A DNA stretch of 64,000 bases from Kudoa neothunni (Eukaryota; Animalia; Cnidaria): contig OZ199839.1 in the NCBI GenBank assembly GCA_964304625.1, positions 6,288,490 to 6,352,489 of the forward strand. Direction: 5' to 3'. The notes beneath the pieces were generated by a model. The model searched no databases. It saw only the letters and a list, made by a program, of their open reading frames with translations, and was not told the origin of the DNA. Each line of letters starts with the position of its first letter. Position 1 is the stretch's first letter. Below, in pieces: positions 16,125 to 42,543 of this stretch. Both the position numbers and the translations under genes were made by a program.

Positions 16125-19100
16125 ATGATTGTAACATCGTTAAAATGGAGATTTGTTACAACATTATATTTGTTTATTTTTTCAGGTAGTCATTTCAATT
16201 AAGTCATATTTTGAATATTTATTAGCAATAATGAGTAAATTTATCTCTACACAAGACATTGATAATAATATAATGAACTTAAGTTTTTCATCGGATATAA
16301 ATAAATACGTTGTTTCTCTTTCTGGTTATCACCTTCAAAATAGCAAAAGAAAGTGTGCACTACAATATTATGATAATAAGGCTTCGTCATTAAAAGTTAT
16401 TCCAACGTGCGCTACGGACATTACGAAGGCAACGGATGATTCCGCCTCAAATAAATGCATCTATGATTGTAAAAAAGTGGAATTGAAATTCAGTTGGGAT
16501 CAAATTAAGGAAATGAAATATCTAAGATGGTGTCAAGGAAAAGATGAGGATGAAGTCAGAAATTGTAACTTAAAGAAAGTTTATAAAATAAAAGGTAATT
16601 TAATTACAAATGAAATTTAGTGATAACTTTATGATAGATATATATGTTAAATCATCATTAAGGGTTGATAAAACAACCGACCAATTTACTATTTACATTA
16701 AAACTAAAATTGATAAGGGATTCAACCTCAAATGTGACTCTAATAATGAAGTTACTCATAATGCAAGTAACAATTTTTACAAAGAACAATCAATTCAACT
16801 AAAAACTAAATCATACCAACCAAAATATGCTGTTGAATTCAATGACAAATCTCCCGAAATATTTCTGAATCCCAAAAAACCTATTGAAGATTGGTTTATT
16901 GCGTCTGGATCAAAATCAGAAGCTGATAATAAGCGCTATTTCACAATAAGACTCCAAAATCCCGAACCGTCCAAGTTATGTTATTTTGGAATAAAAGATA
17001 TTAACGATTTGCGGTTTTCATCTTATTGCTCTATAAGGAATAAAGCTGGTCCGTGCCTTCAACCCTGTTACAAGGCGACATTATTCTATGACTCTGATTT
17101 GAATTTTGCCCAAGTTCTTGTAAAATCAGTTGGAAAGTCAAATTCAAAGGAATTTATTCAAACTGTTTTATGTATTCCTTAATTGTCTTACAAATTTTAA
17201 AAAATTTTGTAGTTCGTAATAATCAACCCACTGACGTTCTTTCGAATAAACAAAATAATCGAATTACAGTTAATCTTTCAGAATTAAATAAAAATGAAGA
17301 TGCTGATAGTGCAGTAGGTGCAGCAAAAATCACAGATGTAAAATTAATAAGGAAGTTTATGGGGACTGATAGTTTTGGAGATAACGTAACATGTGAAAAT
17401 GATTGTACTTCATTCGTTTCAACAACTATAACAGGACTTGAACCGTTAACTGAATACATTTTAAAGTTAAAAATCACGGGACTAAAAGCATTAGATTCAC
17501 CCGAAGTGAAACATTATCACCATTACTTTTATTTCAAAACTAAAGGTAAAACGATTTTTAAAAATATATCTAAATGTTGAATAGGAATTGAGTTTAGCAA
17601 TGGTAAGCAAATAACACCATCGGTCGGCGTTGGAAACACAAAATTGACGTTAACTCCAACTAATCTTTTCACTGCTGGATCTAATAATAATAACAACGCA
17701 GAATGTGAACTGTATTATTCTGTGGAAAATGAGAAATCCAAGCTACCTGCTACTTGTGAAAAAGATTCAAAAAAATTATTTTGCTCAGACATCTGTACTA
17801 GTGAATTCACAATTATAAATCTTGATCCTATTACACACTACAAAATAACTATCTGCTCCAAAGGTTACACATGTGCCGAGAGTGACTCCGTATCGAGTAA
17901 TTTTGGTAAGTTAAATGTTATTTAATTTAAATAGCAAATGGAAAAACTGTTACTATAAATAAATCAGACGATACTGCAGCAAAAAAGATCATTGCTACAA
18001 TGTCTGAGACTCCTAATGGAAATACTGAGAATTCCTGGCGTTATACTTTATTGGAAAAAGATTCCAATAAAATTATAGTGGATTGTCTGAATACCGATTG
18101 TACTCTTGAAACGCAAACAGATTCAGGATCAACGAAATTAGAAATTCCATGGTCTACTGTTGACCCAGAAGTTGCATACGAACTAGTTATAATAATTATA
18201 GATCAATCAAAACCAGTGAAATCAGAAATAACAAGTTGTTAAATGAATTAATCACCATTAAATATATAAATTTAGGGGACGCTGAAAAAGGGACGGGTGA
18301 TATGATTCTAACATACGATAAAACGCAAAGAAATTATAAGGTGAAATTTACAGGTGATTTATTGTCGAAAAGCGGTAAGACATGTAAAATTAAAATATCT
18401 GACAATGCGTTATCTGCATACGTCAATGCTGGTGACAGTAGTTCAGCAATCGAAAAAGATTGCGATCAACTTGTAACAGATGTTACTATTAATCGTAGTA
18501 GTGGAAACAAGCTGGCATATATTTCAGTTACGTATTCGGACACGAAACCTTCATCTGCTAAATCAACTATTGATTTATCAATTTTATCTAAAGCAACTAT
18601 TGGAAAAATGTTAAATGGTGATTACATAAATGAGGACAAGAATTATCTTTCTAAATCTTCAGTAGAAAGAAAAGAAGGTGCAGTCCCTGATAGCACCGTG
18701 GGACCAGAACAAACTGGTCTCTTGGAAGATACAAAAAAAGCTGGAGAAGGAACGGAACGAGATGAGCTTAAAAAGACTGTTCCAGACTCAGCACTAACGA
18801 AAAAACCCGCTTCACCCCCAAAACCGATCCCCTTCACTGCAGGAAAGGTCTTTTCGTACTACATAGGTAATCTGCTTTGATGATGTAATATAATGTTGTT
18901 AAGATTTTTACAATGAATTAACGCATATGGCTGAATTACAGCAAGATAAAATTAAATTTAGTGTCAATAAGTGTTCTTTAAATTGTAATGGATATAAGGA
19001 TGAAGTGAAGGAAAGTTCCTTCCATGGAACTACATCTGAGAATCCCGGTAACATTGAAAGTTACTCAATAAAGTTTGACGAACTAGTTGAAGACTATTAC

Positions 19101-22100
19101 ATAAGTTGCCCAAAATATTTTGACTTTCATTACTTCTATGACAACACATTTGTAAAAAACAATGCACCATTCTTCAATAGATTTTATTATGAATTGGCTT
19201 ACAGTGATCCAGTTAATAAGTTAACGATAAAATTAGTTAACGAAGAGCCTTCTGAAATATGTTCTTTTGAATGGATTGACGCGACTGCATCATCTACTAA
19301 TAGATTTTTCTCAAACACCTGCGATAATAATGCAAACTGCCTTTTTAGTTTGTGTAGTAACGTTACATTTGGAGATATTCCAACGGGTGTAAAGGCAGTA
19401 AAAATACGCGTTCTCAAATTAGGGATGGAACCTATCGTTGGCTATCAAAATAACATTTATATACGTAATCGTTAAAATAATGTATTATATAAATATATAT
19501 TCTAGTGAAACATGGCAATGATACGTCCGTGACTACATCTGATGACAGTAAAATCAAAGTAAATATGAGCGATAAAAATAAAGACGAAGATGGTCAAGCT
19601 GTCAACAGCGCATCTACTGTAGCATGTGAATTAAAAATCTGGAATGTATACGCTCCGTTGGTTAAGGAAACTGGGAGAAAAGCTGCTAATCCATCTACTA
19701 CTTGCATTTTTGGAGAAATGAGTATTACACCAAATCCTAATGATTTGCCAAATGATATTATGATAACAATAGCAAATATACCAAATTATTCTCCTAGAAA
19801 ATACTTTTATCATAAAACTGGTATTTTATGTAATTTTAGGTAAGCTATTTTACTTGTATAGGACAAACAAATGCTCTTTCTGGTGGGTCAATATCGGCTA
19901 CGCCAGCAGCAAGTGGATTCACATTTACTCCAAGTTCTACAGATATAAAAAGCACATGTTCAATTTACGTGCGAGAACATGATAAATTATATTATTATCC
20001 AGCTATATGCACAGAAAATGTATTGTGTATAAAAAAGTGTAATTTGCCGTTTACTATCATTGGATTGTATTCTGGCGCCACCTATGATATTATGATTGTA
20101 CCTAGTGGTAACTATAAGTTTCATATTTTAGAAGGCCAGAAAACAAGTAACAATATTCCGATTATGGTTTCATGGATAATTATAATTAGCTGGTAAAACA
20201 ATTGAATTCCAAATTTCATCTGAGTCAACAGGTAAAAATCTAAAAATAATACCGACAGAAAATATCGAGAATGATTCAAGTGTTGACTGTTATTATCAGT
20301 TTTATATGCATAAAGAAGGGAACAGTAATAATAAAAGTAAATAATCTTTTAATTTGTTTTTTAGCCTCACCAACGAAGATACAAAAGTCTTGCGTTGAAT
20401 GTGAAATTTCAACTAGTAATCAAAAAAAATGCAATGATATTCAGTTTGGTTCAGGCATATATAGTAATAAACATAATTACAGATTAATGATATATGTAAA
20501 TGACCAATCACCACCATTTAAATTAGAAATTCCGGGTAAACAAAATATAAGTAATTTTTGTAACATTATGACTAGCCTTTTCCCGCCGAGGAAAACTACA
20601 ACAAAAATTTGAACAAACAGTTAACAACGATATTGGGAAATTCTACGTTTCATTATCAGAATATCCAGATGGAAATAAATGTGCCCTAAAACTATCCAAT
20701 TTTGAAGATGTCCCTAATTTTGTGAAACCACTTTGTACCTCGAATACTGACAATAACTTATGCATAACTGATTGCACGTCTCAAAATGTTGAAATTGGAT
20801 ATATTAATGCCAATATCGATCGTTATCTATCAGTATGTTACGGTAAAGATGACAACGATGCGAAATCCTGTAAAAAAATTAGAGTTTTTCCAATAAAAAT
20901 GGGTAATTATAATAAATACTATTTTAATAATGCCGTTATACTGGCATATTATAATTCAATGTTTTTAGATTATAATCAAAAGCATACTTATTCTATCGGT
21001 CACATTGATGGTAAAGTTCGTTTTTCCTACAAAACAAACTCAAAAACCAAATGGACGGTGTATGCTGACGGAGAAAAAGACTTATCTAGTGATGCAGAAA
21101 AAAAGAAATTAGATGAAGATAGTTTCTCTGATACAATAACAGATAAGTCTGCAAATTTCTTAGTTGACAGATACATGGGTTATTATAATATTAACTCAAC
21201 ACTTTTGTGGCCAGGAATTTATTATTTTACGAATACTACCCTATTTAATGACACTATTCCCCTAAAATCAGAGATTATATATTCCATTTCAGCCGTTGAA
21301 AATAACATTAATAACTTGAAAATTCGATTTTCTCCTGGTCCCTATAATGACGAAATGTGCCAAATTAGTATATTTGAAGTGGATTCTGCTGGTACAGATC
21401 ATATGAGAAAAGTTTTGAACGTCTGTGAAAATAAAGAGAATGGTTGCTATCAACTTTGTCGAGATTCTGTTATTAACTTCACAGGAAACCATCAAAATGT
21501 TGGTGTAATTGTGAAAAGAAGATTTGATTCGGCTGGTCTCAAACAATACTTTAGAAGTAATTGAAATCCAACATTATTAATAAAATTTTTTAGGAAACGA
21601 TATTGGCTTTAATCTCACTGACATAACGAGTAATAGTGTCAAACTTATTGGGCTTCAAAATTACAATAATATAAAAAAAGAAAATAATCCCCAATGCACA
21701 ATTAAAATATCTAGAGCAAATACTATATCTACTGAAACCATGGCTCAATGTAGTGGTAATGAATGTAACAAAGACTGTGCCCAGTCATATTTGATTACTG
21801 GCCTCTCGGCTGGTACAAGTTATATAATTACAGTAACAGTTACAAACCTTGGTGTGAATAATGATTATATCAAAAAAGTTTTCTTTAGAACAAGTAAATG
21901 TAGCTTGTGATCATATTATTAATTGTATTTAGTTGATGGAGAACAGCTAACAGAATCAAATTCTCCAAACGCTATCATTGCAAGCACTGCTACTATTATA
22001 CCTTTTCAAGCAGACAATTCGTTCTCATTGTGCAGAATTTATCTACAGAAAAAGGATGATTCAAATGCAAAATTTATGGCTTCGTGTGAAGGAATAGGAA

Positions 22101-23120
22101 CCTGTGAAAATAAATGTGACAATCCATTCAAAATTGTTAACCTTGAATTGGGAGTAACATATGATGTTACTGTGGAGCCATCTGATGGCAAAGGCCTAAG
22201 AACCTTCGATATTACTACTAGTAATAGATTTTTGATTGTATTATTATAAAATAAGTAATAGCTAACGTGGATACTTCGGTTACTTACACATCTTATGGAG
22301 ATTATGGTATAGCAATTAATGTATCGTTTACTGACAAAAAGAAAACTTCAAAATGCCCGTTTATGTTGCACGAAAAAACAGATGTTGGCAAACCAGAACC
22401 AATCATTTTTTGGTGTAATGATGACGAAGAAGAATGTTCATCCAACAGTTGTAATATTGGTATCTACGGATTATCCAGGGAAAAAGATTATAGGTTGAGT
22501 GTGAAAGTGAAGGATTTATCGAAATATAAAATTCACGAGATTCCATGTAATTTTGAAATTAATATCTAACTTATTGTTTTTGGTTAACTAATAATATGAT
22601 GTACTGAAAGACTCAAAAATATCCAAACATTCAGGGTAAAAAATATTTCTAAATTATTTTAATATATGGTTTAGTAAATTTTTATGGATTATTTTTAAAC
22701 TAACATACTAGCAGAAGAGCAAAATATAAGAAGTGAATATACAAACATTGACGTAGGTAATATTTTTCAAAAAAAAATTATAAAAATTGCACAAGGGTAC
22801 ATTGCATACTTTCGAACTTTTCTAATATATTTTTAGTAAATTATGATAATAAGCTGTTTTAAAAAATCTGTAGATAGTGAAAGAAAGCACGAATATGAGG
22901 CCGCCAAGAACAGTCATTCGTATTTTAAATAATATTTAATTTTTTAAATTAAATTAATTTAGGTCTGTTGGAAAATATATGTAATGATAATTTTGTGTAA
23001 TCTTTTGGAATAATTCTTTCTAGCTGTTACGCAATGATACCAATCGTAGGAGCATTGCTAGTAGTGATAGGTTTGGTCATGTTCCGAAGGAAACCCCAAG
23101 ACGTTGCTTACGATTTATAA
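16125..23120 (+). CDS. Gene B: large Cys-rich FN3-like type-I membrane protein with three tandem five-domain modules (about 2000 aa), apparently intact
   Basis: ATG at 16125, signal peptide MIVTSLKWRFVTTLYLFIFS|AIMS with a 40-bp intron. All ectodomain introns read as phase 1 and join the ORF-track fragments in frame. FN3-like motifs GLEPLTEY, NLDPITHY, GLYSGATY, GLSAGTSY, NLELGVTY. An 18-nt micro-exon (22963-22980) precedes the TM/tail CYAMIPIVGALLVVIGLVMFRRKPQDVAYDL*. Confidence 0.85.
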
Positions 23121-23451
23121 GCATAATATTTAGTATAACAATTATCTATTATTAGAATAAGTATTATTTTCATTAACGATAAAATAGGTATTTCGTGTTC
23201 TTTTGAAATGATCAGAAATTAATTCTATCAATTACATATAAACCCATAAGAATTGTAAAAACTAAAAATATGACTCTACTTTTAAAACAGATATTCGTTT
23301 ATGCACGACAGCGAAAGAAGACACTATTTGAAATAAGAGAGCAGAATTAAAGAATCAACAAATATTTAATTCTGTTATTGTAAACATACTTATTTGTTAA
23401 TCCTTACAGTTTTTAAGTTTTATTTTAACCAATTTGTCGTTTTTAATATTA

Positions 23452-24320
23452 ACTTTCGGGAAGTGCCCAGCGTTGCTTGGGGGAGATTTCGTCTAAACAC
23501 GTTTTTTAAATGCATTCAAAAATATGTTGAAATTCCGAATTAACCCATAGAAATAAAATAACTAAAAAGTTTTAAGCTATATACATTAACGACTTGGATA
23601 ATGAAATTTAAATTATGACCATTTCTTTGAGGGAGTGTTCCAATCCCTGCGTTTTAAAAAATTTCGTGGTTCGACATCAACGCTAAATAATTTAAGGGCT
23701 GAATAGTATTTTTTCCATTTCCGAATTATTTAAATCCTGTTAGAATGTTATTTAAAGCGTTATTTTTTGGCTCGGGGGATTTTTAAATGTCGAATTTTGC
23801 CCCGGCTCGGAAAATGTGTGCATCGCTAAATTTTTAAGAGATAATAAAATAGAAAACGTATAAAAATTAATTGATACTGCTAAAATTAGCATTGCTTGGC
23901 CCGGCATAAACATTAGTGCACTTTTACAAAAAAAACAGCTAAAAATCATTTCAATATCAACATAAATAATTTATATAATTAGATGAAGTAAAAGTACAAC
24001 CATCTGCATTGAATCTAATCAATGAAAGTTTCAAATAGCGGACGATTTCAATGAAATCTACGGACATGATGCTTGTATAATAAAGCTTCAATCTACCTGA
24101 TTATAGAATTCCTTACCAGATCGCCATTAATAATGCATATATAGACTTTTTCTCATATTTCAAATCATTAATAGAACATTCACAATATGTTTATCAAGTC
24201 CAATACGTTAAAACTCCACAAATAAGGAGTGTATTTACATAAACATCCATATAGAAATGCCAAACTTATATATATATATATATACAGATAGATAGCAGCA
24301 GTTAATAAACATTTTATTGG
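23452..24320 (-). mobile_element. Non-autonomous Helitron, 5'-truncated copy
   Basis: Reverse-complement match to about 38390-39195, including the hairpin CCCAAGCAACGCTGGG. The terminal CTAG is mutated. Confidence 0.7.
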
Positions 24321-24339
24321 GTATATAATGGGGAAAATT

Positions 24340-27228
24340 AACTTCAACCAACCCTCAGCAGGTTATAAGCAGGTGTTAATCTTATTGTTTAAACTCAAGT
24401 AATCCAATTAACAAACTTTGAATCGAAAAAATCACCATTTGCAAAACATTTTAGTGAACATTTGGTAGTGCAAAAACGATTTAAATATTTTATGAAACAT
24501 TTTGATTTTTAAAAAATTGCAAATATGTCTCTATAAGGAATAAATTTTGACGCATATGCGTACTTGCTGGCACGCACACACACGGACATTTCAGTTTTAT
24601 ATGTATAGTAGACTAGCGCAAAAACCCCGCTTCGGTTGAGTTTCCTTTCCCGACCACCCTGATAAAAGCCGTGAGCAGGCGAAGGTCATTTTAAGTTCAA
24701 AGTTAATTATAATTATCTTATCGATCTTTCTATAACAGTCATGATCGAAATAAACAGCAATGACCCGATCATCCTCACTTTTTTCGTTATTGGACTTTAT
24801 TTTCATTTAGAAATCATAAGTTCTTACAAATCATGAGGCGTATTAATCGTTTTACCCAACCCGTCGATGAACTAACTAATCTAAAAGTTTGTTAACAATG
24901 TTTTACTTAATCAAAACGTTCTAACATAATTTTATATTCATTTAAAAAAAATATAAAAATTTTTAACTTTAACTAAACATGCAAAGTAAATAATATATTC
25001 AAGCGTATTAATTTATTAATTTCCCGTTTAAGCAACAAATCTTTGTTTGCACCGAAACCCCGCCTATGCACGAACAAATGTTGTAATTCGTCTTAAATAC
25101 GTTCAAAAGTAGAAAAGAGTAAACTTTCAAAGTTTCAGTTGTATATAAATACAGAAAATTAGAGTTATCTACGAATATCATTGAACATTGTAGCGAATCA
25201 TGTGCAGTGGTAATCTCATTGTATCAGCGCTAATCTGTTTGAATAAAGTTTACACTACAAATTAACCGCTTTATTAGAAAGTAGACAATCCCGTCGTATT
25301 TTTGTAGTTAATTTTGTATTTTTTAAAGTATATCACGAAAATCAAATAGTCTAAAAAGTCTCTGTATAAGAATATAATTTACACACACACGGACACTACT
25401 ACTTTATATATTAGGATATATTAGGATAGATAGATAGATATAGATATAGATAATGACCTAGAGGAAGGAAAACCTATTGAAACATTGGACACAACAAACG
25501 TATTGAGCTCATTTTCGCACTTTATAAGAGAAGAGATGCTCGAAGAAATTTTATCGTTCACAAACCGTAAAGGTCTTGAAAAATATAATGATCCGTAGAA
25601 ACTCCTAGATTGCATCGGATTAAAAGCTTTCTTAGGATTGCTGTTATTGGCTGGTGCCTATAAATCAAACCTAGAGTGTACAATGATTCTGTGGCATGAA
25701 ATTCAAGGAAGATCATTATTTCGCGCCATTATAAGTGAAATAAGATTTCAAAAAATCTTAAACTTCTTGCGCTTTGATGAACATTGGAAGCGTAAAAACT
25801 TCCCAAATTCAGTTGATAAATTTTCCCCCGCCAGGGAACTGTTTGGAAATTTTTCGGAAATCTGTAAGAATAGTTATATCCCTGGACCTAATTTGACCGT
25901 AGATAAACAACTATATCCGTTCCGAGGGAGTGTATCATTTCTTGTGTACATACTAAAAAAACCATCCAAATATGGGCTAAAATTTTGGATCGTATGTGAT
26001 AGTCAAACGCGTTACGTATCCAACTTTTTGCCTTACTTGGGTAAAATTGATGAATGCCGTGAAACAAATCTATGTTTTAAAGTTGTCATTGATTTGACTC
26101 AACATTTGTTGAAATCGGGAAAAACTATTACATGCAATAATTATTTCACTTCCTGGAAGCTAGCTCAATATTTATGATAAAGAAAAACGTCCATTCTTGT
26201 CACGGTACACCAATGTCGAACATTTATTCCAACCAAATAACTCTCGGAAGATATTTTCATCCTAATTTCTTATGTACCGACGAAAAACAAGGCTGTAATA
26301 ATTCTTTCTTCAGAGTACCATCGTAAACCAAAAGCAATTTTAGATTATAATGTAAAGGAGTGTGATGTTGACACTTTGGATCAATGTATTTCCATGTATA
26401 CATGGAAAAGAAAATGTTGACATTGGCAGTTCGCAGTATTTTGCAAATACTTGATATAACTGCGTGCAATGCATTTGTTGTATTTATTCATGGCAATCCC
26501 CATTATTGGGACACAAACAAGTCAAATCGTCGCCAACGATTTCTCGCGGATTTGTCCATGTCATTAATTAAGCCCGAGCAAGAATGGAGATATAAAATTG
26601 CATTTGTTTCTAACCAGCCTGCTGTTAAAAGAATAATGGAAATAGTTTGTTTCGAATTTAACAAAGAAAGTGATCCTCCAGTGGAAAACCAAGAAAATAA
26701 TCAAAGAAAGCGATGCCGTTTGTGTCCTATTATCAGTATTGCACGTAGAAGCAAGCAAATCTGTCACTTATGTGATCGAAATGTTTGTAATGAGCATTCA
26801 AAGAAAAAAATTATTTGTTTAAATTGTGACTCACAACGAAATTAATTTAAACATATTTTTTGCCTATGGTTTTTTTATTGAACGCAATGTGACGTTTATA
26901 ACGATTGGAACATATAGTAGAAATGAATTTAAAATAAAGGATTTCTATTTTGGTTAACAACCATAATAGGAATGTTGATTAAAATACAAATAAATTAAAG
27001 CTGACACTGAATAAATACATTTTAATAATAGGAAACAATATAATAATTTTTTTGTTATGCGTAATAATATAGTTTATCTTATTACCTTAACTGTTCTATT
27101 TTTATTTATATATCGTATATAATGTGACCTGCCAATAGCAGAAGAGTTAATTTAAGATTAAATTATAATAATGCATTTGACCTAAGTTAATTCTTGGGCT
27201 CCTGGAACCCAGGGTTAGTGTTTAAGGG
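24340..27228 (+). mobile_element. piggyBac element A, copy 1 (left end not found)
   Basis: Right end ...GGGCTCCTGGAACCCAGGGTTAGTGTTTAAGGG|TTAA, with a PGBD transposase inside. The left boundary is a guess. Confidence 0.75.
25450..26845 (+). pseudogene. piggyBac-A transposase pseudogene
   Basis: LTVDKQLYPFRG..KKPSKYGLKFW, ITCNNYFTS and a C-terminal Cys-rich domain RCRLCP..ICHLCDRNVCNEH. Stops and frameshifts; catalytic residues altered. Confidence 0.88.
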
Positions 27229-27769
27229 TTAATTCCTAACGTCTAAAACACATGTAGCCGATAAATCCTAATTTAATCTTATGACGTCATGGTAATCCCA
27301 CTATAGGAAAAAGGAAAACCTACGATTAGAGCATTTCTTTAAGGTTTAATATATATTAATTGTGATAATATGTCGTTGTATATTGTTATCTTTTAATAAT
27401 TTTAATACGAAGTTAAACCATTAAGTATGGGGATATATGGAGAAAATGTGTTCAATTATACAAACATTTTTTCTAGGATAAATTCTTATATTTTTCCAAA
27501 GCTTGAAATTATTTAGTATACAAATATATTTTCAGAGATTAAACGAATTTTGTACGGAAATTTTTGAGGTTTTCATTTTTAAAAATAAGAGATTTTCAAG
27601 TGGCTATTGGTACGGTAAATGGTATTCAGGTGACACTAGTTTGGACTATAAATCTATAGCCAACTTGTAAGTTGAAGTTGCTGAGATTAAAAATTCTCAT
27701 TACGCAAGCGGACATGCCGTTTAAGATTAAATTGTACTGCTGCCAATAGCCTCCGCCAGAAGATTTATC

Positions 27770-27814
27770 TAAAATGGGGTCACGAAAGTCCCCGCATGGT
27801 CCATGGAGGGTTAA
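27770..27814 (+). mobile_element. Orphan piggyBac-type right end
   Basis: GGGGTCACGAAAGTCCCCGCATGGTCCATGGAGGG|TTAA. Also present in the duplicate near 56750. Confidence 0.4.
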
Positions 27815-28384
27815 ACAAGAAAATTTTGTTCCCAAATAATTTTCATTATTAAAATAGAGGAAGTTTGCCACAATAAATTTAAAATTATTTACAGTAAAAT
27901 AGAGCGAATATTAAAATAATTAAATGAAGATGTAAAGTTTAATGGGAAGATAAATAAAAAACGGCTCTAAAGAACCCTAAGTTTGTTGGAGGTTAAAAGT
28001 ATAATTGTTTAATTAATGTGATTACTCACCTCCATTATATTAATTTCCCATGTATTTTATGCATTCTAGAACTACACGTAACATTTCCTTTTCTATATAA
28101 ATCTGAAAACATCCACGGAGAAATTTGACGTAATCTGTATAAATAATGTAATTGATTTGATGTATATGCTCATACTGTTACTTTTAAAGAATTCTCATTA
28201 CGTTAAAAAATATTGATTACACAATTTTTCTGTTGTCTAAAATTCTATCTATTTTTGATTGTTATATTTAAAATAAATATGCGTGAATAAACACGGAAAT
28301 TTTATAATTCCAATTAATTCGTAAAATGGGGTAAATATGTTATGATAAACTATGTTATTCATCAAAATGAAGCTTTTTAATAAT

Positions 28385-31300
28385 TCATTCTTTGATCTTG
28401 TTTTCATTTTTTCTATTTTCTTCCAAAAAATGTGGAAAGTTTTTCTAAAAATTACAATACATATTAAATATGTAATAAAATAAGAAACCTTTATCCTTTC
28501 TATTATAAGACATGACTTTGTGGTTATTTCTTCGTTGAAAGACGTTGACGATAACTCAAGAAATAAATTCAAAATATCGGGCAAAATGCCACTTTCCTCG
28601 ATAAACTCTGATGGCACAAATTGAAAAATATCTTCCGCAATAGGTATCAAAAATTCTATAAATGTTACCCAAAAGTTTTTTTGGGGATATGGCAAAATTT
28701 TCTTAAAGAGTGGCATCACAGAACCAATAATTATTCCTTTATACAACGCTAATGCTTCATGAATGAAATTTTCCATACTTTTTAAGCCCCTTTCAACATC
28801 GGAAGAGTATAACATACTTGGGGCTTGTGAACTTTCACTCTCAAATTCATGTTTAATTCTAAATTTTTCCTTATTTTGCCGAACGAAGGCATCAAATGCA
28901 TGGGAGAAAATATCGCCTAGAATTTGAATATCACAAATATTCAAGGCATTTTCGAAACCGGGTATGGTAATAAACTCCTTAAATATAATTAAAAGCTCAG
29001 TTATTGTCACCGCTGAGGAATTTTTAGTGCATCTCAGAAATTCTGGTTTCAAGTTAGTATTCCACATATTAGTTGCCCCATCAATATCACCATGCAGGAT
29101 AGAACAGTTAAGTAATCGGTACACACCTTTTGCGGTAGGGCAATAAATGGATTCATGCAAAGTATTTTTAAGTATATCAGAAAGAATATTCAAATAAATT
29201 TCAAAACTTTCGTAGACTTTATCAGTACAGTTTTCTACCAAAACGACCACGAATTCACACAGCCAATGTATAACACCAAGGTCGTCCTCAAAAAAACAAG
29301 TTTTACATCCATATAGAGGCGCCGACTTTAAAAGTTCTTTTACGTCGCCTTCCCGTGGGATGCTAACAAAATGGTTTACCTCAGTGAGATATTTAGCTAT
29401 CGAAGACTTTAATTTGGGCAATAACTTGAGTAAACGTGGTGGCTTGCATTTGGCCATGCCCTTTAATAGTGGGAAGAAGCAAGGCTGAATATCAAGCCTG
29501 TCTTTTAATAATATATGTGAATTATCGAAATTTTCTATATAATCTATAGTGAGTAAAGTAAATTGTTCCATTTCATGTGGAAAGTTTCTCTAAAAATTAC
29601 AATACATATTAAATATGTAATAAAATAAGGAACCTTTATCCTTTCTACTATAAGACATGACTTTGTGGTTATTTCTTCGTCGAAAGACGTTGACGATAAC
29701 TCAAGAAATAAATTCAAAATATCGGGCAAAATTCCACTTTCCTTGATAAACTCTGACGGCACAAATTGAAAAATATCTTCCGCAATAGGTATCAAAAAGT
29801 TTATAAATTGTACCCACAAGTGTTTTTGGGGATATGACGAAATTTTCTTAAAGAGTGGCATCACAGAACCAATAATTATTCCTTTATACAATGCCAATGC
29901 TTCATGAATGAAATTACCCATACTTTTTAAGCCCCTTTCAACATCGTAACGGTGTAACATACTTGGGGCTTGTGAACTTTCACTCTCAAATTCATGTTTA
30001 ATTCTAAATTCTTCCTTATTTTTTCGAACGAAGGCATCAAATGCATGGGAGAAAATATCGCCCAGAATTTGAATATCGCAAATATTCAAGGCATTTTCGA
30101 AACCGGGTATGGTAATAAATTCCTTAAAGATAATTAAAAGTTTGGTTATTGTCACCGCTGAGGAATTTTTAGTGCATCTCAGAAATTCTGATTTCAAGTT
30201 AGTATTCCACATATTAGTTGCCCCATCAATATCACCATGCAGGATAGAACAGTTAAGTAATCGGTACACACCTTTTGCGGTAGGGCAATAAATGGATTCA
30301 TGCAAAGTATTTTTAAGTATATCAGAAAGAATATTCAAATAAATTTCAAAACTTTCGTAGACTTTATCAGTATAGTTTTCTACCAAAACGACCACGAAAT
30401 CACACAGCCAATGTATAACACCAAGGTCGTTCTCAAAAGAACAAGATGTACATCCATATAGAGGCGCCGACTTTAAAAGTTCTTTTACGTCGCCTTCCCG
30501 TGGGATGCTAACAAAATGGTTTATATCAGTGAGATACTTAGCTATCGAAGACTTTAATTTGGGCAATAACTTGAGTAAACGTGGTGGCTTGCATTTGGCC
30601 ATGCCCCTTAATAGTGGGAAGAAGCAAGGCTGAATATCAAGCCTGTCTTTTAATAATATATGTGAATTATCGAAATTTTCTATATAATCTATAGTGAGTA
30701 AAGTAAATTGTTCCATTTCATGTGGTAAGTCACATAAGCTTTCATTACATAAGAAAATCAGCAATCTATGTCCATAATAATCAAAGCTAGCGGACGTCGA
30801 GAAGAATTTGCGCAATATTATAAAAATATGGTCTATTATTCCAGAAATGTAGCGGTGAGGCTCAGATTTGATAATTTTAAAAACAATTCTTAAGGAAGTA
30901 GTTAGTGTATATGTAAGCTTCGTCGTTGCATCGTCATTTGATTTGGAAATTAGATCACACAAAGAGATCCAAATATTCGTCGCCCCAATTAAGGCAATCT
31001 CAAACTTGATATAGCTGCATTTACAAACAATTTTTTCCAAAGCTCTTATGGCTATTATTTTGATGAAGCCATTATTATGATTTGTTGCCGCCTCTACAAT
31101 TAACGATAAGACTTCTTTGTGGAAGCCAATCAGTGTGTCCCGATGGTACATAAGGCATAATAACTCAGCTAGTTCAATTGTAGAATACAAAATTTTTGGA
31201 TTTTCACAAGAAAAATAAGGTAGTACTATACGAAGCATTTCCCGGGGCTCTAAACGTTCCCCTTTTCTTGAGTAAGAAGCCAATAAGTACATAATTTCAA

Positions 31301-32694
31301 TTGCTGTATCAATCTTTCTCCAATCAGAAGATTTTAAATATTCGTTAGCTCGTTTTTGAAACAAGTTATATACAACTTCGCTATCAAGTGCAGGCACAAT
31401 ACTACGGAAAAATGTTTGCATTAGCGTTTGTTCATTCTCTGAGAAGAAAGCGTTGTATAATATGTAATTGTCTATAAGCCATTGTTCTGGGTTGCTAGGA
31501 TAGGAGTCAATATGAAAACGTAGTGCATTGTCAATCATAGCTGGTATGAAACATTCACAGTTTTCTCTAACCTCCTCCCGAAACCATACAATAAGTTTCT
31601 CGGTCAATTTGTACAGCTCATAGTGGACTGGCCTTTCAATGCTGCTATTATTTTGAAGTTGCACCAATGTTTTGAAGGTCAGTTGTGAATAATCTTTAAA
31701 TAAAAATGAATAAGCTTGATATATCTCATGCATTTCTTTCATAAATAAAAGCCCCTCAGTAGTAGATACAAAAGTTTCCATTGCCTTCAATATATGTGGA
31801 ATCACGATTGAAAAATATATAACAAAAGGATCGTCATCCAATTCGTCAACGAAGTAAATCATATTATTCATTGGAATCCATACAAACTAAAGTATATTTA
31901 TATGTATATAAATAGATATGGAGTTCATTTAAATGTTGAATCGGTCGAATATAATTTTTAGAATATTTATTTTTAATAATATCTCATACATTTGGGATAT
32001 CTGAACTTTTTTCAAAACATTCAATGAAAAATTTGCTATATTGCACGTACGTATCCTCATCGGTTGTTGAAAATAATCCTCCATGGTATCTACAATCAAA
32101 AGCTCCTAATTTACAAACAGAAATTTATTTTACCTGAAAAAGACTGTTACACTGTCATGCAACTCCAAATTATTAGAAGTTAGACAACGGGTAACCAATT
32201 CCATAATAACTTCCAATTTATCTATTTTATTTTTGTTGATCAGTCTAATAACACTAGCGCAAGTCGATAACAATTTTTCTTGATGAGATTTCACTTCTTC
32301 ATTGACTAATAGGTTAAAGAGGTGGGCCTTTATTTCATTGACTAACTTATCAGAAACATTATTATCAATACAGAAAGTATCGCAGTAATGTTTGAGGAAT
32401 AATGAAGCCGTTTGTTTCAACTTGACGAATATTATTGTAGTAAAATAGTGGGAATTTACCTTATATGATTTTTGAGAGGATAAAACATCAAGCAAAAACT
32501 GTATTTTTTGATTAATCGGAAATAAATTCAATTTCACCTTCGATCATTAGTTAAAATATTAATCAATATTTATAACAGCTTACTAACGTGCAACTATTTC
32601 TTATGTCACAAAAAGGACCAAACTCACTTAAAATTGAACAAAATTCTACAAAATCCGACTTTTCATAGTTATTTTTATTAGACTCGATTTTCAT
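28385..32694 (-). CDS. Diverged importin-5/karyopherin-beta-like HEAT-repeat protein, copy 1 (about 1330 aa, 2 tandem 367-aa blocks)
   Basis: Seven-exon in-frame model from ATG 32694 (MKIESNKNNYEKSDFVEF). Segments QKIQFLLDVL..LKQTASLFLKHY, YLKSSDWRKIDTAIEIMYLLA and VLPYFSCENPKILYSTIELAELLC..GFHKEVL resemble IPO5/IPO4 HEAT repeats. One junction needs a GTGTAA donor (47-bp intron). The 3' end is uncertain. Confidence 0.7.
28430..30725. repeat. Tandem repeat, 2 x 1145 bp (1101-bp exon + 44-bp intron)
   Basis: The 1145 period is visible from antisense ORFs at 28964 and 30109. Junction microhomology CCACAT (minus strand). Confidence 0.93.
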
Positions 32695-33751
32695 TGAAGC
32701 TCACTGCTTAACGTGGATTTATCCGAAAATACCAATAATTCAATCGGCTGCTTACAAATCATCATTCATTAATTTGTTAATCTTTTATCAATAAAATTGT
32801 TATCGATTATCAAATCAACGCGACCATCTAAATACATTTGTGCCTCAATAGCGAATAGATACCCACTGAATAAATGCACCAATATGACTCATTACGGTTA
32901 AAGTTCAGTTCCTTCGGCGTCCGCCGGTTACACGCCATTGGTAATAATTGGGGGTTCAGGCTGTTTACATTTTCCGGAGTATGCTTCCTGCAATCTTCAC
33001 GTACGAAAATTTAGATAACCTAAATTTTGAAGACTTATGTTAATTCAAGAATCATCCTGAAGATTTAATTATTTTTTTCCAACAACTTGACTTACTACTA
33101 ACTTCAAGGTTTGTTCTTGTGGAGGTCAAATGAAACTTTCTCTAGGGAACAATGCTGCTGATGTTTCAAGTCATGCAGGAAGGAATGCTCGTTATGAAAA
33201 AATACGTTTTTCTACCAAGCCCTACTTTCTGCGTATCTGTATCAAATTTTAAAGATTTTATATTTTTGGGGCGTGGGAGCGACGGAACAATCTTTCTTAA
33301 TGAAAGAATGCCATATTAATTCTTCCGCCACTAATGTGGATTGGAAAAATTTTATACGTGACATTTGTTTGAGTCACTTCATTCGTAACCCAAACAAAGT
33401 GGGTGGCCCTGGCGTAAAAGTCCAAATAGACGAAAGTCAAATTCGTATGAGGAAGTTTGGGGTTGGTAGAATCCTACAAAATCAAAGTCTGTGGATAGTT
33501 GGTGGTGTGGATGAGGATGGAAAGGTTTTTATGGTGGAAACCGAAAAGAGAGACACTCCCACTCTTGAAAATATTATTACTACTCATGTTGAGAGGGGAT
33601 CCGTTATACATACAGATGGATGGCCTGCCTATAGTTCACTCACTGAGCTAGGTTATGAATACGGTCATGAGGCAGTAATTCATGATAGGGAGTTTGTCTC
33701 GTCTACAGGAGTCCACACCAATCGAATTGAGGGACTGTGGAGCGCTTCTAA

Positions 33752-36724
33752 TCCTCCCGGGACGAAGGGGGTGCATTATGCACCCCAATTTTTTTATTAT
33801 CAAAAATCTCCCTTTTTACACGTTAAGAATCTGATTCATGTTTTGTCAAATCTCACTACTTTATTAATATTTTTATCTAATAAATTTAAAATAGATAATT
33901 TGAAAGAAATTGGTTTAATATTACTAGTTAAAATGGCGCAGGTTATCCTTTACCTTCAAAAATTATAAATAATGATAAGTGGTGGTTACTATATCGTATA
34001 AAATTTATTTTTACATATAAAGCACTAATTAAATTAAAATGAAATGCGTAGAAAACCTAAGAAATCATATTTATAACTTATACCGAATTAGCCCCATGGA
34101 CCATAGGATTATTTTCAAAAACGCACGAGTGGTAACGTTGTCATTTGGGATCTGCAGGTGCATTTACGTTTGTATGAAAATTTGTTAATATTTAATTTTC
34201 GATAAAGTTATGCTATCAGAAAATAATTCAGATGATCTTATTGGAGATTTTAATAATAATGAATATGCTGACAGTGACCTAGAATTTGAAGGTCGCAGGT
34301 CTGATGAATCCTCATATAATGATTTTATTGAATATTCTGGAATTTCAGATGACTCAGAAGTCGACGGTGATGAAATATTGCAAGGGATAACGACTAGTAA
34401 ACCAGGTTTCCAGTGGAAATATGGCTGCAAATCAAGAAAACGAACGAGGTGCCACAATCATGTTATCGATAAGCCTGGTCCCATAGGAAATTCAGGAAAT
34501 ATTTCGTCAATTTTATCTTCGTTCCAGCTGTTTTTTTCTGATTCTGTGTTAGAAAAAATTTTATTCTTCACGAATAAGTACAGGCAGTCAAGTACTCAGT
34601 ATAAACATACAAATACAATAACGATGGAAGAATTAGTGGCCTTCCTTGATGTTATGATTGCGTCTGGTCGTTGTAATGGATCAAGAATGTCCCTCAAACT
34701 CCTTTGGAAAACTCACCCCCTATTTTAGCAGCCTTTTTTCAGCTGCAATATCGAGAGACCGATTCACCCTCATTTATCGGACTATCCGATTTGATGACAA
34801 ACTAGAACCTATCCGTGAGATTTTCGAGGAAATCAATATATCTTTTCGGGAAAATTTTTCACCCGGTTTACATATAACCATTGATGAACGAATGGTAGGT
34901 TTCCGAGGTAAGTGTCCATTCCGTGTCTACATAAAGAATAAACCCGTACGTTTTGGTATGAAACTTTGGGTTGCAGCCGATGCTGACACCTCATATTTGC
35001 TGAATGTGCAACCGTACATAGGAAGGATGGGCAACGTACGCGAGACTAAACAAGGGGAAAGGGTTTTCAAAGACCTCATGACTCTGGTTTTTGGTTCTGG
35101 GCGAGGATTGACAACTGACAATTTTTTCACCTCCGTGCCCTTGGCATTATTTTTACTACAGAAAAATATTACACTTACTGGAACTTTGTGAAGAAACAAC
35201 AGATATGTACCTGATATTCTTCGAGATTTTGCTTCTCTGAAGACGTGACATTAGTGTCATATATTCCCAAGAAAAATCGTAATGTTTTTCTATTGTCGAC
35301 TGAAATCCATGACAGTTCGATTGAACCATCAGAAAGAAAATGCCCCGAAATTATTCTAAATTATAATCAGACCAAAGGGGGCGTTGACAATGACGATCGG
35401 ATGACGCAACAATACAGCTGTGCTCGGACAACAAGAAGGTGGCCATTCAGGTTGTTTATGGACCTTATTGATATATCAACATTGAATTCTTATATTATAT
35501 GGATGATGGATGTCGAGGTTCCCAGACTGGCGATCAAGTGATCAAAGTCGGCGCCAGTATTTTCTTCGGGGACTGGCAACTGAATTAGTCAAACCGAATG
35601 TTTTGAGTCGTCAAAGTTTAGGACATATTTATCACTCTCATATTAAATTTGGATTTAATATATTTGACAAATACATAAAGGACGGTCAAACATCTATTTC
35701 TAATGAAGAAACTTTAATCCCAGTACAGTCAAGATGTACGCTTTGTCCAAGGAATATTGACGGGAAGTCCAGAGTTTCATGCTACACATGCAAGAAGACA
35801 GTGTGCCATTCGCATCGAATTTAAAAAAAAGTTATACAATGTCTTAGTTGTAATATGGAATCAAACTAATGTTCAAAAATTAATCCAATTTTAACAGATT
35901 TTTTAAATTGTGAAATATTTTTTAGTTCAAAAGTCCATTTATGTATGGTATTCATCTCCTCGAGAATAGAATGAAAATTACACAATGAATATATCATGTT
36001 TTAGTTAAAATTGTAATAGCTAACTTACAAATTTTTTTAATTGGAATATTTATTTTCATGCGTTCGGTGCTGCTTTGAAAATTCAACTTAACCCATTAAT
36101 AATAATAATAAATAATATAATACATTTTGAAAGCTACAAGTGAGAATAAATCCTAAAATACTTAACTCATATCGTTAAGATTAGTATGTATACATGAAAT
36201 TAATTTATTCTGTTCAATCATCAGTATTTATCTATATTACATTTCGTTTTTACTAAGTTATAGAATCGGAAGCTACAACGCAACGACGATTATTAGGTGA
36301 GAAAGAATTCCCTGCTAATTTAATCTCATTATCCATATATGGGAATAACGAGAATAATCGGTAGTTTACATAGACCTGGATGGCTCGACTCTCGGTATAG
36401 ATGTAAAAAAAACTCTGAAGCCGATAGCTGAATCTTCTAAGAATTTATAGAGAGCTTTATTGTTTTATTGAATACGTTTCGCTTGAATATTACGTTGATC
36501 CATCGTTTCTTTAATGGATTGTTCTTATTTGTTAAATGTGTTTTTTTTCTATAGAGCTATACAATTTTGACTTCTGGGTGGATCTTTTTAATATGTAAAT
36601 AATTTTTACTCAAATTAAACGGTGTATTGCATCAATAAAGAGTAATAACATGAAAATTTTCTGGAGTGCATAATGCACCCCCTTCGTCCCCCGCGTTAGT
36701 TTTTTGAGCTCCGTCTTCCGAGGG
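33752..36724 (+). mobile_element. piggyBac element B
   Basis: Terminal IRs TCCTCCCGGGACGAAG / CTCCGTCTTCCGAGGG, plus an asymmetric subterminal IR GGGACGAAGGGGGTGCATTATGCAC. Flanks CTAA and TAAA are mutated TTAA. Confidence 0.85.
34210..35869 (+). pseudogene. piggyBac-B transposase pseudogene
   Basis: ITIDERMVGFRGKCPFRVYIKNKPVRFGMKLW, TTDNFFTS, YNQTKGGVDNDD, RRWP and a Cys-rich C-terminus. Frameshifts and deletions. Confidence 0.9.
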
Positions 36725-38082: not shown

Positions 38083-39195
38083 TCCTTTATATATATATAA
38101 AAGAGGACTGTCGGTATGTTTGTTTGTGTGTGTATGCCCCTAAGTACGCATGTGCGGATAATTTTTTCCTTATAGAGAGCCATATATAAAATTTTTATAA
38201 ATTTGTGATATTTAAAAAAATCGTTTAATTGTTTTCGGACTACGAAAGTTTCCAAAAAGTATTTATAAAATAGTGATTTTGTCGATTTAAAGTTTGTTTT
38301 TCGGATTAAATGAGTTCAACTATAGGATTAGCACTTGCTTATTTCATGGTTATGGTCGGTTGAAGTTAACTATCTCCTTTATATGCTCCATCATATGTTC
38401 ATTAACTGCTTCTATCTATCTTTATATATAAGGTTGGCGTTTCTATTTGGGTTCCTGTTTAAACACACTCTTTATTTGCGGAGTTTTAAGTTTTAACGTA
38501 TATGTCTCATAAATAACGAATTCGCGGAGAACGTTAAAGTCACATTGATTGAAGCGTTATAATGGAAATACTGCGTTCATAGGTTTCATTAAATTGTCCG
38601 CTAAGTTTTACTTTATGTGATTAAATTCAATGCGGATGGTTGTACTTTTATTTCACCAAATTATTTAAATTGTTTATGTTGAAATCGACGCAATTTGTGG
38701 CTGTTTATGATAAAAGCGCATGTAGGTTTATGCCGAGCTAAACGGTGCTAATTTTAGCAATATCGATTAATTTTCATAAGTTTTCTTCTATCTCTTTTAT
38801 TTTTTTTTCTAAAAAGTTAGTGGTGCACCCAGTTACTGAGCCAGGCCAGAATTCTACATTTAAAAATCCTCCGGGCCAAAAAATAACGTTTTAGATAACA
38901 CTTTAACGGGATTTAAATAATTCGGAATGAAAAACGTACAACGCTGACCTTAATTTGTTTAGCGTTGATGCCGAGCCACGAAATTTTTAAATGGGCGCAG
39001 GGATTGATACTTTCCTTCACAGAAATTATCATAATTTAAATTGCATAATCCAAATCGTTATAGTAAGTTGCTTAAAAATGTTTAATTATTTTGCTTCTAT
39101 GGGTTAATTCGAGATTTCAATATATTTTTTGAATGCTATTAAAAAATGCCTCTAGGCGAAATCTTCCCCAAGCAACGCTGGGAAATTCGAGCTAG
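38083..39195 (+). mobile_element. Non-autonomous Helitron (full length, about 1.1 kb)
   Basis: A|TC 5' end followed by (TA)n and (GTTT/GT)n. 3' hairpin CCCAAGCAACGCTGGG and CTAG|T. No TSD. Confidence 0.8.
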
Positions 39196-40379
39196 TTAAT
39201 AATATACTTTATATCGTATTCAAAAAAATTAATATATAAATATACAATTTATTATTTATAAAAGTTTACCAATTTAAAATCTTCATATAAATCAAATTAG
39301 TATTAAAATATTTTTAATTAATGTTGTTCTTCGATTTCATAACCAAAAATATCAGTGTACGAAAAATATAATTATTGTTAGTTTCAATTTCGCGAATAAT
39401 TGAGGTATAAAAATTTATAAACTAAAATAAACAATTATAGATATTACTAAATGTTTCAAAAGTTAATTTGACCTTTAGAAATAATGATAGATGACATATT
39501 ATTTCTCAATATTGGACAAGCTTCCTTAGAAAATTCACTGCACCAAATTTAATATGTACATAGTATGAAAATTTAAATAATGGTATTAGGATAAAATTAG
39601 CAAATAATCAGCTATTTTTCGGAGTTTATGGGAAAATGATGCGGATTACACGTGTACCCGACTGTAGTCAAATGGGAATTAGGCAAAAATTTAGAAGTAA
39701 TTTATTTGAGCTCAATATTCTTTTATTTATTATTGATAATCGTAAAAGAAAAAAAGAGAAATAACGCACGAAAGATGATGTTTTTCTGGAGTGACATACT
39801 TTATCATTACCACAATATTATTAAATAAAATTCTTTCTGTATGAGAATTCCGGACGAATAATGCCCTCAATGTCTAGATTTTGGTTGTTAAATCGGCGAG
39901 TGAACCGTAGCATTCGAAAATAACTTCAAGTTTTAATAGATAATTTAAATTTGAAACGTACTTTTAAAATCACTCGTTTCACTTAAATATCTTGTGAATA
40001 ATCTTATTTAAGTATTAAATAATTAAAAATAGAAAAAATTATGAAGTCAAATTGCCGTGTCATGAAATTTAAAGAGTTTAAGAAATACAAGAATAGTTGT
40101 GTCTAAAATTTAATGGATAGAAAAATTAACTCCCATCTGTACCAGACTTTCAAGTTAAAGATTTTTTCGCCAGCACCAAAAATAAACGAACGAAAGGGTG
40201 AGGATTGCCTGATCGAAACACGTGTTGATTATTTCAGGTCGCACGATGAGTTAAGTTTTTATTGTTTCCTATCTTGAAGTATGCTGTGCCAATCATAAAA
40301 CAAAAATATGTAACGTAATTCAATATATATCGATCCCAAAAGTTAAAATAACATTTTCTGCCTCGAGGGTATCCTACAC

Positions 40380-40474
40380 GGCATGGTTCCGCGTTTTCCT
40401 GCGCCGTCCAAATTAGCCAAAAAATTATTCATGACCCATATGTGGGTCATATGATCCCAGATTGGGAAACACTG
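40380..40474. mobile_element. hAT element end (other end not found)
   Basis: TTGGGAAACACTG TIR end with subterminal GACCCA/TGGGTC repeats. Flank GTTTATAT has a central TA. It marks where B/B' 3' homology stops. Confidence 0.5.
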
Positions 40475-42543
40475 GTTTATATAAAGATGGATAGAATTAA
40501 TTTCTAATTAGTTCAAAAGAACATGAAATACATATTTTATCGTTAATGAACATAATACGTATTCTAATAATAGATAATTGCTATACTATATATTATGCTT
40601 ATAAATCGTAAGCAGCGTCTTGGGATTTCCTTCGGAACATGACCAAACCTATCACTACTAGCAATGCTCCTACGATTGGTATCATTGCGTAACAACTAGA
40701 AAGAATTATTCCAAAAGATTACACAAAATTATCATTACATGTATTTTCCAACAGACCTAAATTAAATTAATTTAAAAATTGAAATATTATTTAAAATACG
40801 AATGACTGTTTTTGGCGGTCTCATATTCGTGATTTCTTTCACTATCTACAAATTTTTTTAATTCAGTTGATTATCATAAATTTACTAAAAATATATCAGG
40901 AAAATTAGGAAACATGTAGTGTACCCTCTTGCAATCTTTACAATCTTCTTTTGAAAGATATCACCTACGTCAGTGTTGGTATATTCACTTCTTATATTTT
41001 GCTCTTCTGCTGGTGTTAGTTTCAAAATAATCCATAAAAATTTACTAAACAATATATTAAAATAATTTAAAAATATTTTTTTTTACCCTGAATGTTTTGA
41101 TATTTTTGAGTCTTTCAATACATCATATTATTAGTTAACCAAAAACAATAAGTAAGATATTAATTTCAAAATCACATGGAATCTCGTGAATTTTATATTT
41201 CGATAAATCCTTCACTTTCACACTCAACCTATAATCTTTTTCCCTGGATAATCCGTAGATACCAATATTACAACCGTTGGATGAACATTCTTCTTCGTCA
41301 TCATTACACCAAAAAACTATTGGTTTTGTATTGGTATCGTCTGTTATCTCGTGAAACATAAAAGGGCATTTAGAAGTTTCCTTTTTATCAGTAAACAATA
41401 CATTAATTGCTATACCACTATCACCATAAGATGTGTAAGTAACCGATGTATCGACGTTAACTATTAATTATTTTATAATAATACAATCAAAAATCTATTA
41501 CTAGTAGTAATATCGAAGGTTCTTAGGCCTTTGCCATCAGATGGCTCCACAGAAACATCATATGTTATTCCCAATTCAAGGTTAACAATTTTCAATGGAC
41601 TGTCACATTTATTTTCACAGGCTCCTATTCCTTCACACGAAGCCATAAATTTTGCATTTGAATCATCTCTTTTCTGGAGATAAATTCTGCATAATGGAAG
41701 CGAATTTTCTGCTTGAAAAGGCGTAACTGACGCAGTGGTTGCTTCTATAAATTTTTGAGAAGTTGAATGTGTTAACTGTTCTCCATTGGCTAAATACACT
41801 TTGTAACATGATTATAAGCTGCATTTACTTGTTCTAAAAGAAACTTTTTTGATATAATCATTATTCACACCAAGGTTTGTAACTGTTACTGTAATTATAT
41901 AACTTGTACCAGCCGAGAGGCCAGTAATCAAATATGACTGGGCACAGTTTTCGTCACATTCAACATTACTACATTGAGCCATGACTTCAGTAGATATAGT
42001 ATTTTCTCTAGATATTTTAATTGTGCATTAGGGATTATTTTCTTTTTTTATATTATTGTAATTTTGAAGCCCAATAAGTTTGACACTATTACTCGTTATG
42101 TCAGTGAGATTAAAGCCAATATCGTTTCCTAAAAATGTTATATTTATATTTCTGGATTTCAATTACTTCTGAAGTATTGTTTGAAACCAGTCGAATCAAA
42201 TCTTCTTTTTACGATTACACCAACATTTTGATGGTCTCCTGTGAAGTTAATAATAGCATCTTGACAAAGTTGATAGCAACCATTCTTTTAATTTTCACAG
42301 ACGTTCAAAACATTCTCTGTTTTATCTGCACCAGCAAAATTCACTTCAAATATACTAATTTGGCACATTTCGTCATTATGGGGACCAGGAGAAAATTGAT
42401 TTTTCAATTTATTATTGTTATTTTCAACTGCGGACACAGAATAAATAATCTCTAATTTTAGAGGAATAGTGTCATTAAATAAGGTAGTATTCGTAAAATA
42501 ATAAATTCCTGGCCACAAAAGTGTTGAGTTAATATTATAATAA

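Follow-up and report, generated by a model that had tools for sequence, protein, structure and literature searches.

Karyopherin-beta genes are usually present in one copy per subfamily, and their products are of stable length. The locus described here raises the question of whether a gene of this class can gain a large internal block in a single step and remain a coding gene. It lies in a 64,000-nt window (the whole stretch of DNA analysed) of the cnidarian Kudoa neothunni, positions 6,288,490 to 6,352,489 of contig OZ199839.1 in assembly GCA_964304625.1. Two related genes are found there: gene A, which carries a tandemly repeated block of coding sequence, and its segmental-duplicate copy, gene B. 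On balance we find it probable that gene A is a real protein-coding member of the importin-5 (IPO5) family with an in-frame block duplication born at a microhomology, and that its product is most likely a divergent transport receptor or adaptor.

A tandem block in frame across its own predicted intron

A direct repeat with a spacing of 1145 bp runs through the gene A region. By self-BLAST, 28430-29585 aligned to 29575-30730 at 96.1% identity, and the paralogous region at 57.3-62.9 kb contained three units. Boundaries were then set from the junction motif, with coordinates given as read on the minus strand (Table 1); the resulting counts, two in gene A (A1 and A2) and three in gene B (B1 to B3), agree with those of the first-pass annotation made from the letters of this stretch. 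Tandem Repeats Finder, for which the longest period allowed was 500, did not detect the array. Each unit includes a 44-nt intron, and 1145 minus 44 leaves 1101 nt, or 367 codons; this arithmetic, put forward in the first-pass annotation together with the GT-AG borders of the intron, holds for both units of gene A. The coding strand, on which that annotation was silent, is the minus strand.

When the exons of gene A were joined in silico, they gave 1342 codons without an internal stop, a slightly longer protein than the 1330 residues first proposed. The introns measure 46, 44, 103, 44 and 44 nt, and all run from GT to AG. Splicing across intron 4 reads ...ERIK/RNFPHEMEQF in frame (slashes mark junctions here and below), exactly the join that had been foreseen. 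Stops make up 6.8% of codons on the coding strand. At this frequency a run of 367 open codons has a chance probability of 5.6e-12, so chance does not explain the open frames.

The intron within the unit runs from GT(T/C) to TTTTTAG. Among its five copies in genes A and B only two positions vary, with 0-2 substitutions, and GT and AG are kept in 5/5. A short intron past the large exon must likewise be removed to reach a conserved tail exon in 10/10 paralogs examined. Both parts of the tail motif, x-[YF]-P-x-x-F ... K-x-x-I-E-x-L-L, are present in seven of these ten paralogs and one part in the other three. In most of the ten, the frame of the large exon ends in K and then V, consistent with a donor of the form lysine codon/GT; a script that scored candidate donors in the paralogs did not pick this donor every time. 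With intron 4 retained, the frame stops 29 codons past unit 1, and the predicted product would be of about ancestral length.

The two ends of the array and its internal junctions point to how it began. The array starts (30725) at ACTTACCACAT/GAAATGG, within the large exon, and ends (28435) at ACTTTCCACAT/TTTTTGG, within the last exon. Internal junctions A1/A2, B1/B2 and B2/B3 all read AGAAACTTTCCACATGAAATGG and are identical in 3/3 cases. Since they are identical and lie at CCACAT, we conclude that there was one founding event at this microhomology, the same joint (LPHEM versus FPHFL) that the first reading of the sequence had singled out. Pairwise, the units differ by 1.7-6.5% (19 to 74 sites), in structured patterns common to several units, which speaks against an assembly stutter.

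Gene A is derived from importin-5

Searches with single exons against general collections were blank. With exon 4, phmmer returned 0 matches among 1.84e9 representative proteins, and exons 4 and 2 gave chance-level matches only in the PDB. The genome's own canonical IPO5 was matched by exon 4 at a BLASTP E value of 3e-28, with 25% identity over 411 aa, and exon 2 (134 aa) matched the N-terminal exon of the same gene (E 1.9e-5). A profile of 12 paralogs, built from derived members only with canonical importins left out, matched human importin-5 (6xte_A) at 7.6e-24 over IPO5 residues 213-861; the family profile matched the genome's own IPO5 at 2.2e-79. The IBN_N domain was detected neither in exon 2 of gene A nor in canonical IPO5 itself.

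Structure prediction led to the same protein. An AlphaFold2 model of exon 4, made on the 12-paralog alignment, is all-alpha with 35 helices, a predicted local distance difference test score (pLDDT) of 82.7 and a predicted template modelling score (pTM) of 0.73. Foldseek placed RanBP5 first (E 3.8e-10), with Kap121p and importin-4 following at the top, in line with the IPO5/IPO4 result that had been expected of such a check. By VIA-align, model residues 1-751 superimpose on residues 211-951 of RanBP5 (6xu2_A) with a Z score of 21.9 and on residues 185-928 of Kap121p with a Z score of 21.6. Other HEAT proteins score Z 16-19, and the fold alone would not single out IPO5. Based on the matches to the genome's own IPO5, the profile, the ranking of structures and the exon 2 match taken together, gene A is derived from importin-5, and the original description of an importin-derived HEAT solenoid stands.

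Exon 4 matches human IPO5 from about residue 211 to residue 951, a span formed by the HEAT arch of the centre and C-terminus. The block that is duplicated, residues 388-751 of exon 4, answers roughly to IPO5 residues 565-950, or some six or seven HEAT repeats within the C-terminal arch. The structural alignment stops at IPO5 951 and Kap121p 928, and a full C-terminal arch (IPO5 about 950-1097) was not recovered. From the alignment ranges, the family seems to have lost the last ~150 residues of IPO5 and to carry a short tail exon of 19-38 aa instead.

A divergent family in the same genome

The assembly of 40.26 Mb consists of three large contigs (17.2, 12.0 and 11.0 Mb) and one of 18.2 kb. Its short introns and TTTTTAG acceptors are reminiscent of nematodes such as Strongyloides, but such an affinity is not supported: no Rfam SL1 match was obtained, a weak negative since that search returned nothing at all, and the best HSP70 matches (below) belong to other groups. 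The genome-wide searches proposed earlier, for further paralogs and for a separate canonical IPO5, were both productive. A profile search found 14 full-length members with 24-47% identity: four on contig C1, seven on C2 (A and B included) and three on C3. The large exon, of about 750 codons, is uninterrupted in 13 of the 14, despite the 6.8% frequency of stop codons. One member, at C3:7537729-7542666, reads partly as N or X and was left out of alignments and tree. The canonical IPO5 lies on C2 (Table 1), where exon 4 matches it at 1.361-1.363 Mb, and is the sole locus in the genome with Importin_rep_4. Three derived paralogs adjoin it, at C2:1.331, 1.340 and 1.351 Mb (region C2:1331081-1365577), and this neighbourhood is probably the birthplace of the family. 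In the tree, gene A groups with the paralog at C2:1.351 Mb beside canonical IPO5 with support of 100/100; the rest of the family is a deep radiation that is poorly resolved, and its terminal branches measure about one change per site. As judged from these comparisons, gene A is a fast-evolving extra copy of importin-5.

Four tandem short copies were also noted on C2 (2114669-2131975). They match the N-terminal exons and profile positions 1-80 only, and look like truncated, N-terminal-only copies.

A word-indexed search of 5.8e9 proteins with the family profile, using a 5-residue-word prefilter and length limits, found no match among 5749 candidates. As a control, an intronless HSP70 of this genome matched metazoan proteins in the same collection (arthropods, rotifers and flatworms) at up to 78% identity. 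Given this control, the blank search means that the collection holds no close relatives and is not proof of absence; the IPO5-derived family has so far been found only in this genome.

Probable exchange between genes A and B

Identities among the units form a mosaic. A2 and B3 are the closest pair (98.3%), followed by A1 and B2 (97.0%) and by A1 and A2 (96.2%), while B1 is 93.5-94.9% identical to each other unit. The 5' exon region shows a comparable step: upstream of the array, 1750 bp hold only 3 differences between A and B, and the 320 bp that follow hold 38. We take the mosaic as a sign of gene conversion and of unequal exchange between A and B.

A divergent tract of ~1.5 kb in gene B comprises the last 320 bp before the array together with B1 (30731-31050; 59670-61140) and is 88-95% identical to A, in DNA that is otherwise 98-99.8% identical. 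The tract fits either a gene-conversion boundary or the remnant of an older copy.

We considered a simple history in which B gained a unit after the A/B split. It is a misfit, with B1 the most divergent unit, A1 nearest to B2 and A2 nearest to B3. The divergence of B1 and these pairings instead fit either a unit lost from A or gene conversion.

Selection on the units

The variable states among the five units comprise 40 that are synonymous and 65 that are non-synonymous, whereas 79.6% would be non-synonymous under neutrality (binomial p = 2.4e-5). For pairs of units, dN/dS (the ratio of non-synonymous to synonymous rates) ranges from 0.34 to 0.62. Changes private to B1 (n = 35) divide into 14 synonymous and 21 non-synonymous. 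Read from these counts, the pattern indicates purifying rather than diversifying selection overall, over most of the history of the units.

The non-synonymous changes are clustered at unit codons 91-120 (18 versus 3 synonymous), 241-270 (10 versus 2) and 301-330 (7 versus 1). Two of these patches, the first and the second, fall on parts of the model with low confidence (residues 485-487 and 636-645), and in the model the helices appear conserved among units. The most variable patch of all, unit codons 92-103 (about 30452-30417 and 29307-29272), is a loop with a family-conserved G-C-x-x-C and a further Cys; it partly overlaps a low-confidence model stretch.

A model for the origin of the array

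We propose that, in the ancestor of A and B, illegitimate recombination or a replication slip joined the two CCACAT microhomologies, one in the large exon (LPH/EMEQF) and the other in the short last exon (FPH/FLEEN). The 1145 bp doubled in this way would be the final 364 codons of the large exon, the 44-nt last intron and three codons from the beginning of the tail exon. As the intron was duplicated together with its flanking codons, removing it would restore the frame, and the protein would gain a second 367-residue block.

The boundaries of the unit in the model, by DSSP, are the first residue of helix 388-403 and the end of helix 737-750. Both breakpoints (x-P-H) appear to fall at the start of a helix, the second of them in the tail exon, outside the model. 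With breakpoints at helix starts, the second block would stack on the first in register and the C-terminal arch would grow by about six or seven HEAT repeats, the N-terminal region and the central part staying single. A segmental duplication of at least 8.3 kb would later have given copy B, and homologous unequal crossing-over with gene conversion may thereafter have produced the counts of two versus three and the mosaic identities; this order of events is inferred. The predicted protein would most likely still be a karyopherin-like HEAT adaptor, with an N-terminal region homologous to the Ran-binding end of IPO5 and an enlarged C-terminal arch.

Alternative explanations

Several observations weigh against a coding role for gene A. 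Neither the exons of gene A nor the four paralogs searched gave a Pfam match at E below 0.01, and none of the signatures IBN_N, Importin_rep_4/6, HEAT_EZ and TPR_IPO5 was recognised in gene A. The structure and splicing of the gene are predicted from DNA sequence, and the in-register continuity of the two blocks is predicted from helix positions. A TGA stop common to A and B removes the last 9 residues, including the family-conserved IExLL tail, and the former stop persists in frame 30 nt further on (28357-28355). Gene B has two frameshifts as assembled, gene A is set among transposon remains, and the contrast between A1 and A2 alone (12.5 synonymous, 30.5 non-synonymous changes, a share of 71%) is near the neutral 79.6%.

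The main rival explanation is that A and B are both decaying and that the duplication arose as a neutral accident of structure, in a region rich in transposons and segmental duplications; what is open in A would then be the remnant of a copy functional until recently. The premature TGA, the frameshifts in B and the near-neutral A1-A2 contrast all fit such an account, as do the piggyBac-like, IS1595/Merlin-like and MULE sequences in the flanks and the fact that only about 140 bp of 5' flank are common to the two genes. It accounts less well for 1342 open codons in A with all five splice sites intact, for a significant synonymous excess that extends across the units and includes the B1-specific changes, and for non-synonymous changes that are clustered, in two patches within low-confidence stretches of the model, with helices that appear conserved. 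We consider decay of both genes a serious but rather unlikely explanation for A. For copy B the balance is different: both of its indels are homopolymer-length changes, which could be real mutations or assembly errors, and B is probably a recent pseudogene, the alternative being such errors.

A bolder alternative, close to that of the first-pass annotation, is a neo-functionalised karyopherin, perhaps a variable binding or restriction protein, whose solenoid length has been repeatedly altered by unequal crossover under conflict with parasites, transposons or meiotic drivers. The difference in unit number between A and B, the gene-conversion mosaic of identities, the patchy non-synonymous change (as at unit codons 91-120) and the size and great divergence of the IPO5-derived family are all in its favour, and it has a precedent in the duplicated nuclear-transport genes of Drosophila discussed below. 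However, dN/dS stays below 1 overall, the two largest variable patches fall where the model is of low confidence, and the longer array, that of B, is frame-broken. The block duplication is moreover restricted to A and B among the 14 full-length members. We regard this explanation as improbable. Its mechanistic core fares better: at the DNA level, one junction, two versus three units and the mosaic support a change in unit number between the two copies. Like the idea of conflict, the image of an in-frame "accordion" used in the first-pass annotation goes beyond the evidence. It is apt for the 1342 open codons of gene A but not for three-unit gene B as assembled, with two 1-bp insertions that this annotation had missed, and, given these frameshifts, the shared nonsense codon and a single pair among 14 members, it is an extrapolation from one intact two-unit gene.

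The idea can be carried further, to the family as a whole: the 14 full-length and four short genes would be diversifying karyopherin-like receptors or decoys under conflict with viruses, transposons or drivers, the block duplication would be adaptive, and retention of the intron would switch between one-block and two-block isoforms. We offer this as speculation to which we attach little weight.

Faulty assembly, through expansion of a repeat or misplacement of a haplotype, could have created the tandem units or all of copy B. This is hinted at by the homopolymer nature of both B indels and by the 99.8% identity of A and B in parts, but it is very unlikely in view of the structured sharing of 19 to 74 differences between units, the different flanks of A and B, the MULE beside B only, and a neighbouring duplicated segment that joins the two copies by opposite ends.

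Relation to known systems

The likeness of gene A to IPO5/RanBP5 and Kap121p/Pse1 (karyopherin-beta3) lies in the same all-alpha HEAT solenoid, in profile homology and in the top structural matches. Unlike a canonical IPO5, gene A is only about 25% identical to that of its own genome, is without a Pfam importin or HEAT match, belongs to a family whose members appear to stop about 150 aa short of the IPO5 C-terminus, and carries the C-terminal block twice.

In arrays of leucine-rich repeats, ankyrin repeats, TAL-effector repeats and zinc fingers, misaligned unequal crossing-over changes the number of repeats. The gene A array resembles them in that, given two tandem units, misalignment would add or remove whole units in frame. 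It differs in its unit, an intron-containing 367-aa multi-HEAT block in place of a single repeat of 24-40 aa, and in that the only counts observed, two and three, belong to two paralogous genes and not to alleles.

A survey of karyopherin-beta proteins reported little evidence of large paralogous expansions, the largest case being 15 XPO1 genes in Trichomonas vaginalis (O'Reilly et al. 2011, PMC3083441). The family described here is likewise one karyopherin-beta subfamily greatly expanded in one genome. In contrast to the Trichomonas case, it comprises 14 full-length and 4 short IPO5-derived copies, in a 40-Mb metazoan genome, that are too divergent for Pfam.

Nuclear-transport genes have duplicated repeatedly in Drosophila, where paralogs of importin-alpha, Ran and Ntf-2 have been linked to meiotic drive (PMC8645118). 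Drosophila is the only documented setting that ties such duplicates to genetic conflict, and the duplicates are described as mostly retrocopies of other transport genes. The Kudoa genes share with them the character of extra, fast-evolving, lineage-restricted nuclear-transport copies; unlike them, they are DNA-level copies with introns, from an importin-beta-type gene, and one has an internal block duplication.

Returning to the reading that we favour, gene A as a coding IPO5 derivative, one gene displays a clear and datable route for a solenoid to gain a multi-HEAT block in one step with the frame kept. Should gene A be expressed, it would offer a natural test of how far the arch of a transport receptor can be lengthened and an entry point to why this lineage multiplied IPO5. 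If it is not, it would be a well-preserved case of microhomology-mediated exon-intron duplication and unequal crossing-over only.

Table 1. Features of the two importin-like genes, their repeat units and their surroundings (positions within the window, except for canonical IPO5, which is placed on contig C2)
Feature	Position	Strand	Remarks
Gene A, IPO5-derived paralog	32694-28385	-	six exons; coding sequence 4029 nt, 1342 aa
Gene A exons	32694-32584, 32537-32134, 32089-31990, 31886-29634, 29589-28489, 28444-28385	-	
Exon 4	31886-29634	-	751 aa; unit A1 is its last 364 codons
Intron 4	29633-29590	-	44 nt, GTTCC...TTTTTAG; co-duplicated; keeps unit 2 in frame
Intron 5	28488-28445	-	44 nt, ends TTTTTAG
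TGA stop common to A and B	28387-28385	-	nearest paralog has TCA (Ser)
Tandem unit A1	30725-29581	-	1145 bp; includes intron 4 (29633-29590); 96.2% identical to A2, 97.0% to B2
Tandem unit A2	29580-28436	-	1145 bp; includes intron 5 (28488-28445); 98.3% identical to B3
Upstream breakpoint, ACTTACCACAT (encodes LPH)	30720-30730	-	CCACAT; 10/11 bases in common with downstream breakpoint
Downstream breakpoint, ACTTTCCACAT (encodes FPH)	28430-28440	-	in last exon
Gene B, segmental-duplicate copy	62784-57328	-	three units; introns 59722-59679, 58577-58534, 57431-57388
Tandem unit B1	60815-59670	-	
Tandem unit B2	59669-58525	-	
Tandem unit B3	58524-57379	-	
1-bp insertion in unit B1	59778/59777	-	GG instead of G; gene B open frame ends at 59681 as assembled
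1-bp insertion in unit B3	about 57615-57619	-	T5 instead of T4
Canonical IPO5	about C2:1360640-1365577	-	open reading frames with Importin_rep_4 (2.8e-12), HEAT_EZ, Importin_rep_6; human importin-5 at 1e-38
Inverted pair of segments	16439-24582 and 38125-50357		74-91% identity; carries FN3-like surface-protein genes
Direct pair of segments	24537-32836 and 50353-62926		96.6-99% identity; carries importin-like genes
MULE/SWIM (Mutator-like) DNA transposon	51950-55085		3.1 kb; 128-bp terminal inverted repeats 51950-52077 and 54958-55085, 96.9% identical
MULE transposase open reading frame	52663-54267	+	intact, 535 aa
piggyBac-like (DDE_Tnp_1_7) and IS1595/Merlin-like transposase fragments	25638-26174, 33273-33965, 34210-34725		both sides of gene A

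The surrounding window

The window, with about 30% G+C, is a mosaic of segmental duplications. Besides the direct pair of segments that holds genes A and B, it contains an inverted pair, to opposite ends of which the members of the direct pair are attached. The MULE, found in the flank of gene B only, was probably inserted after the segmental duplication, the alternative being its loss from the flank of A.

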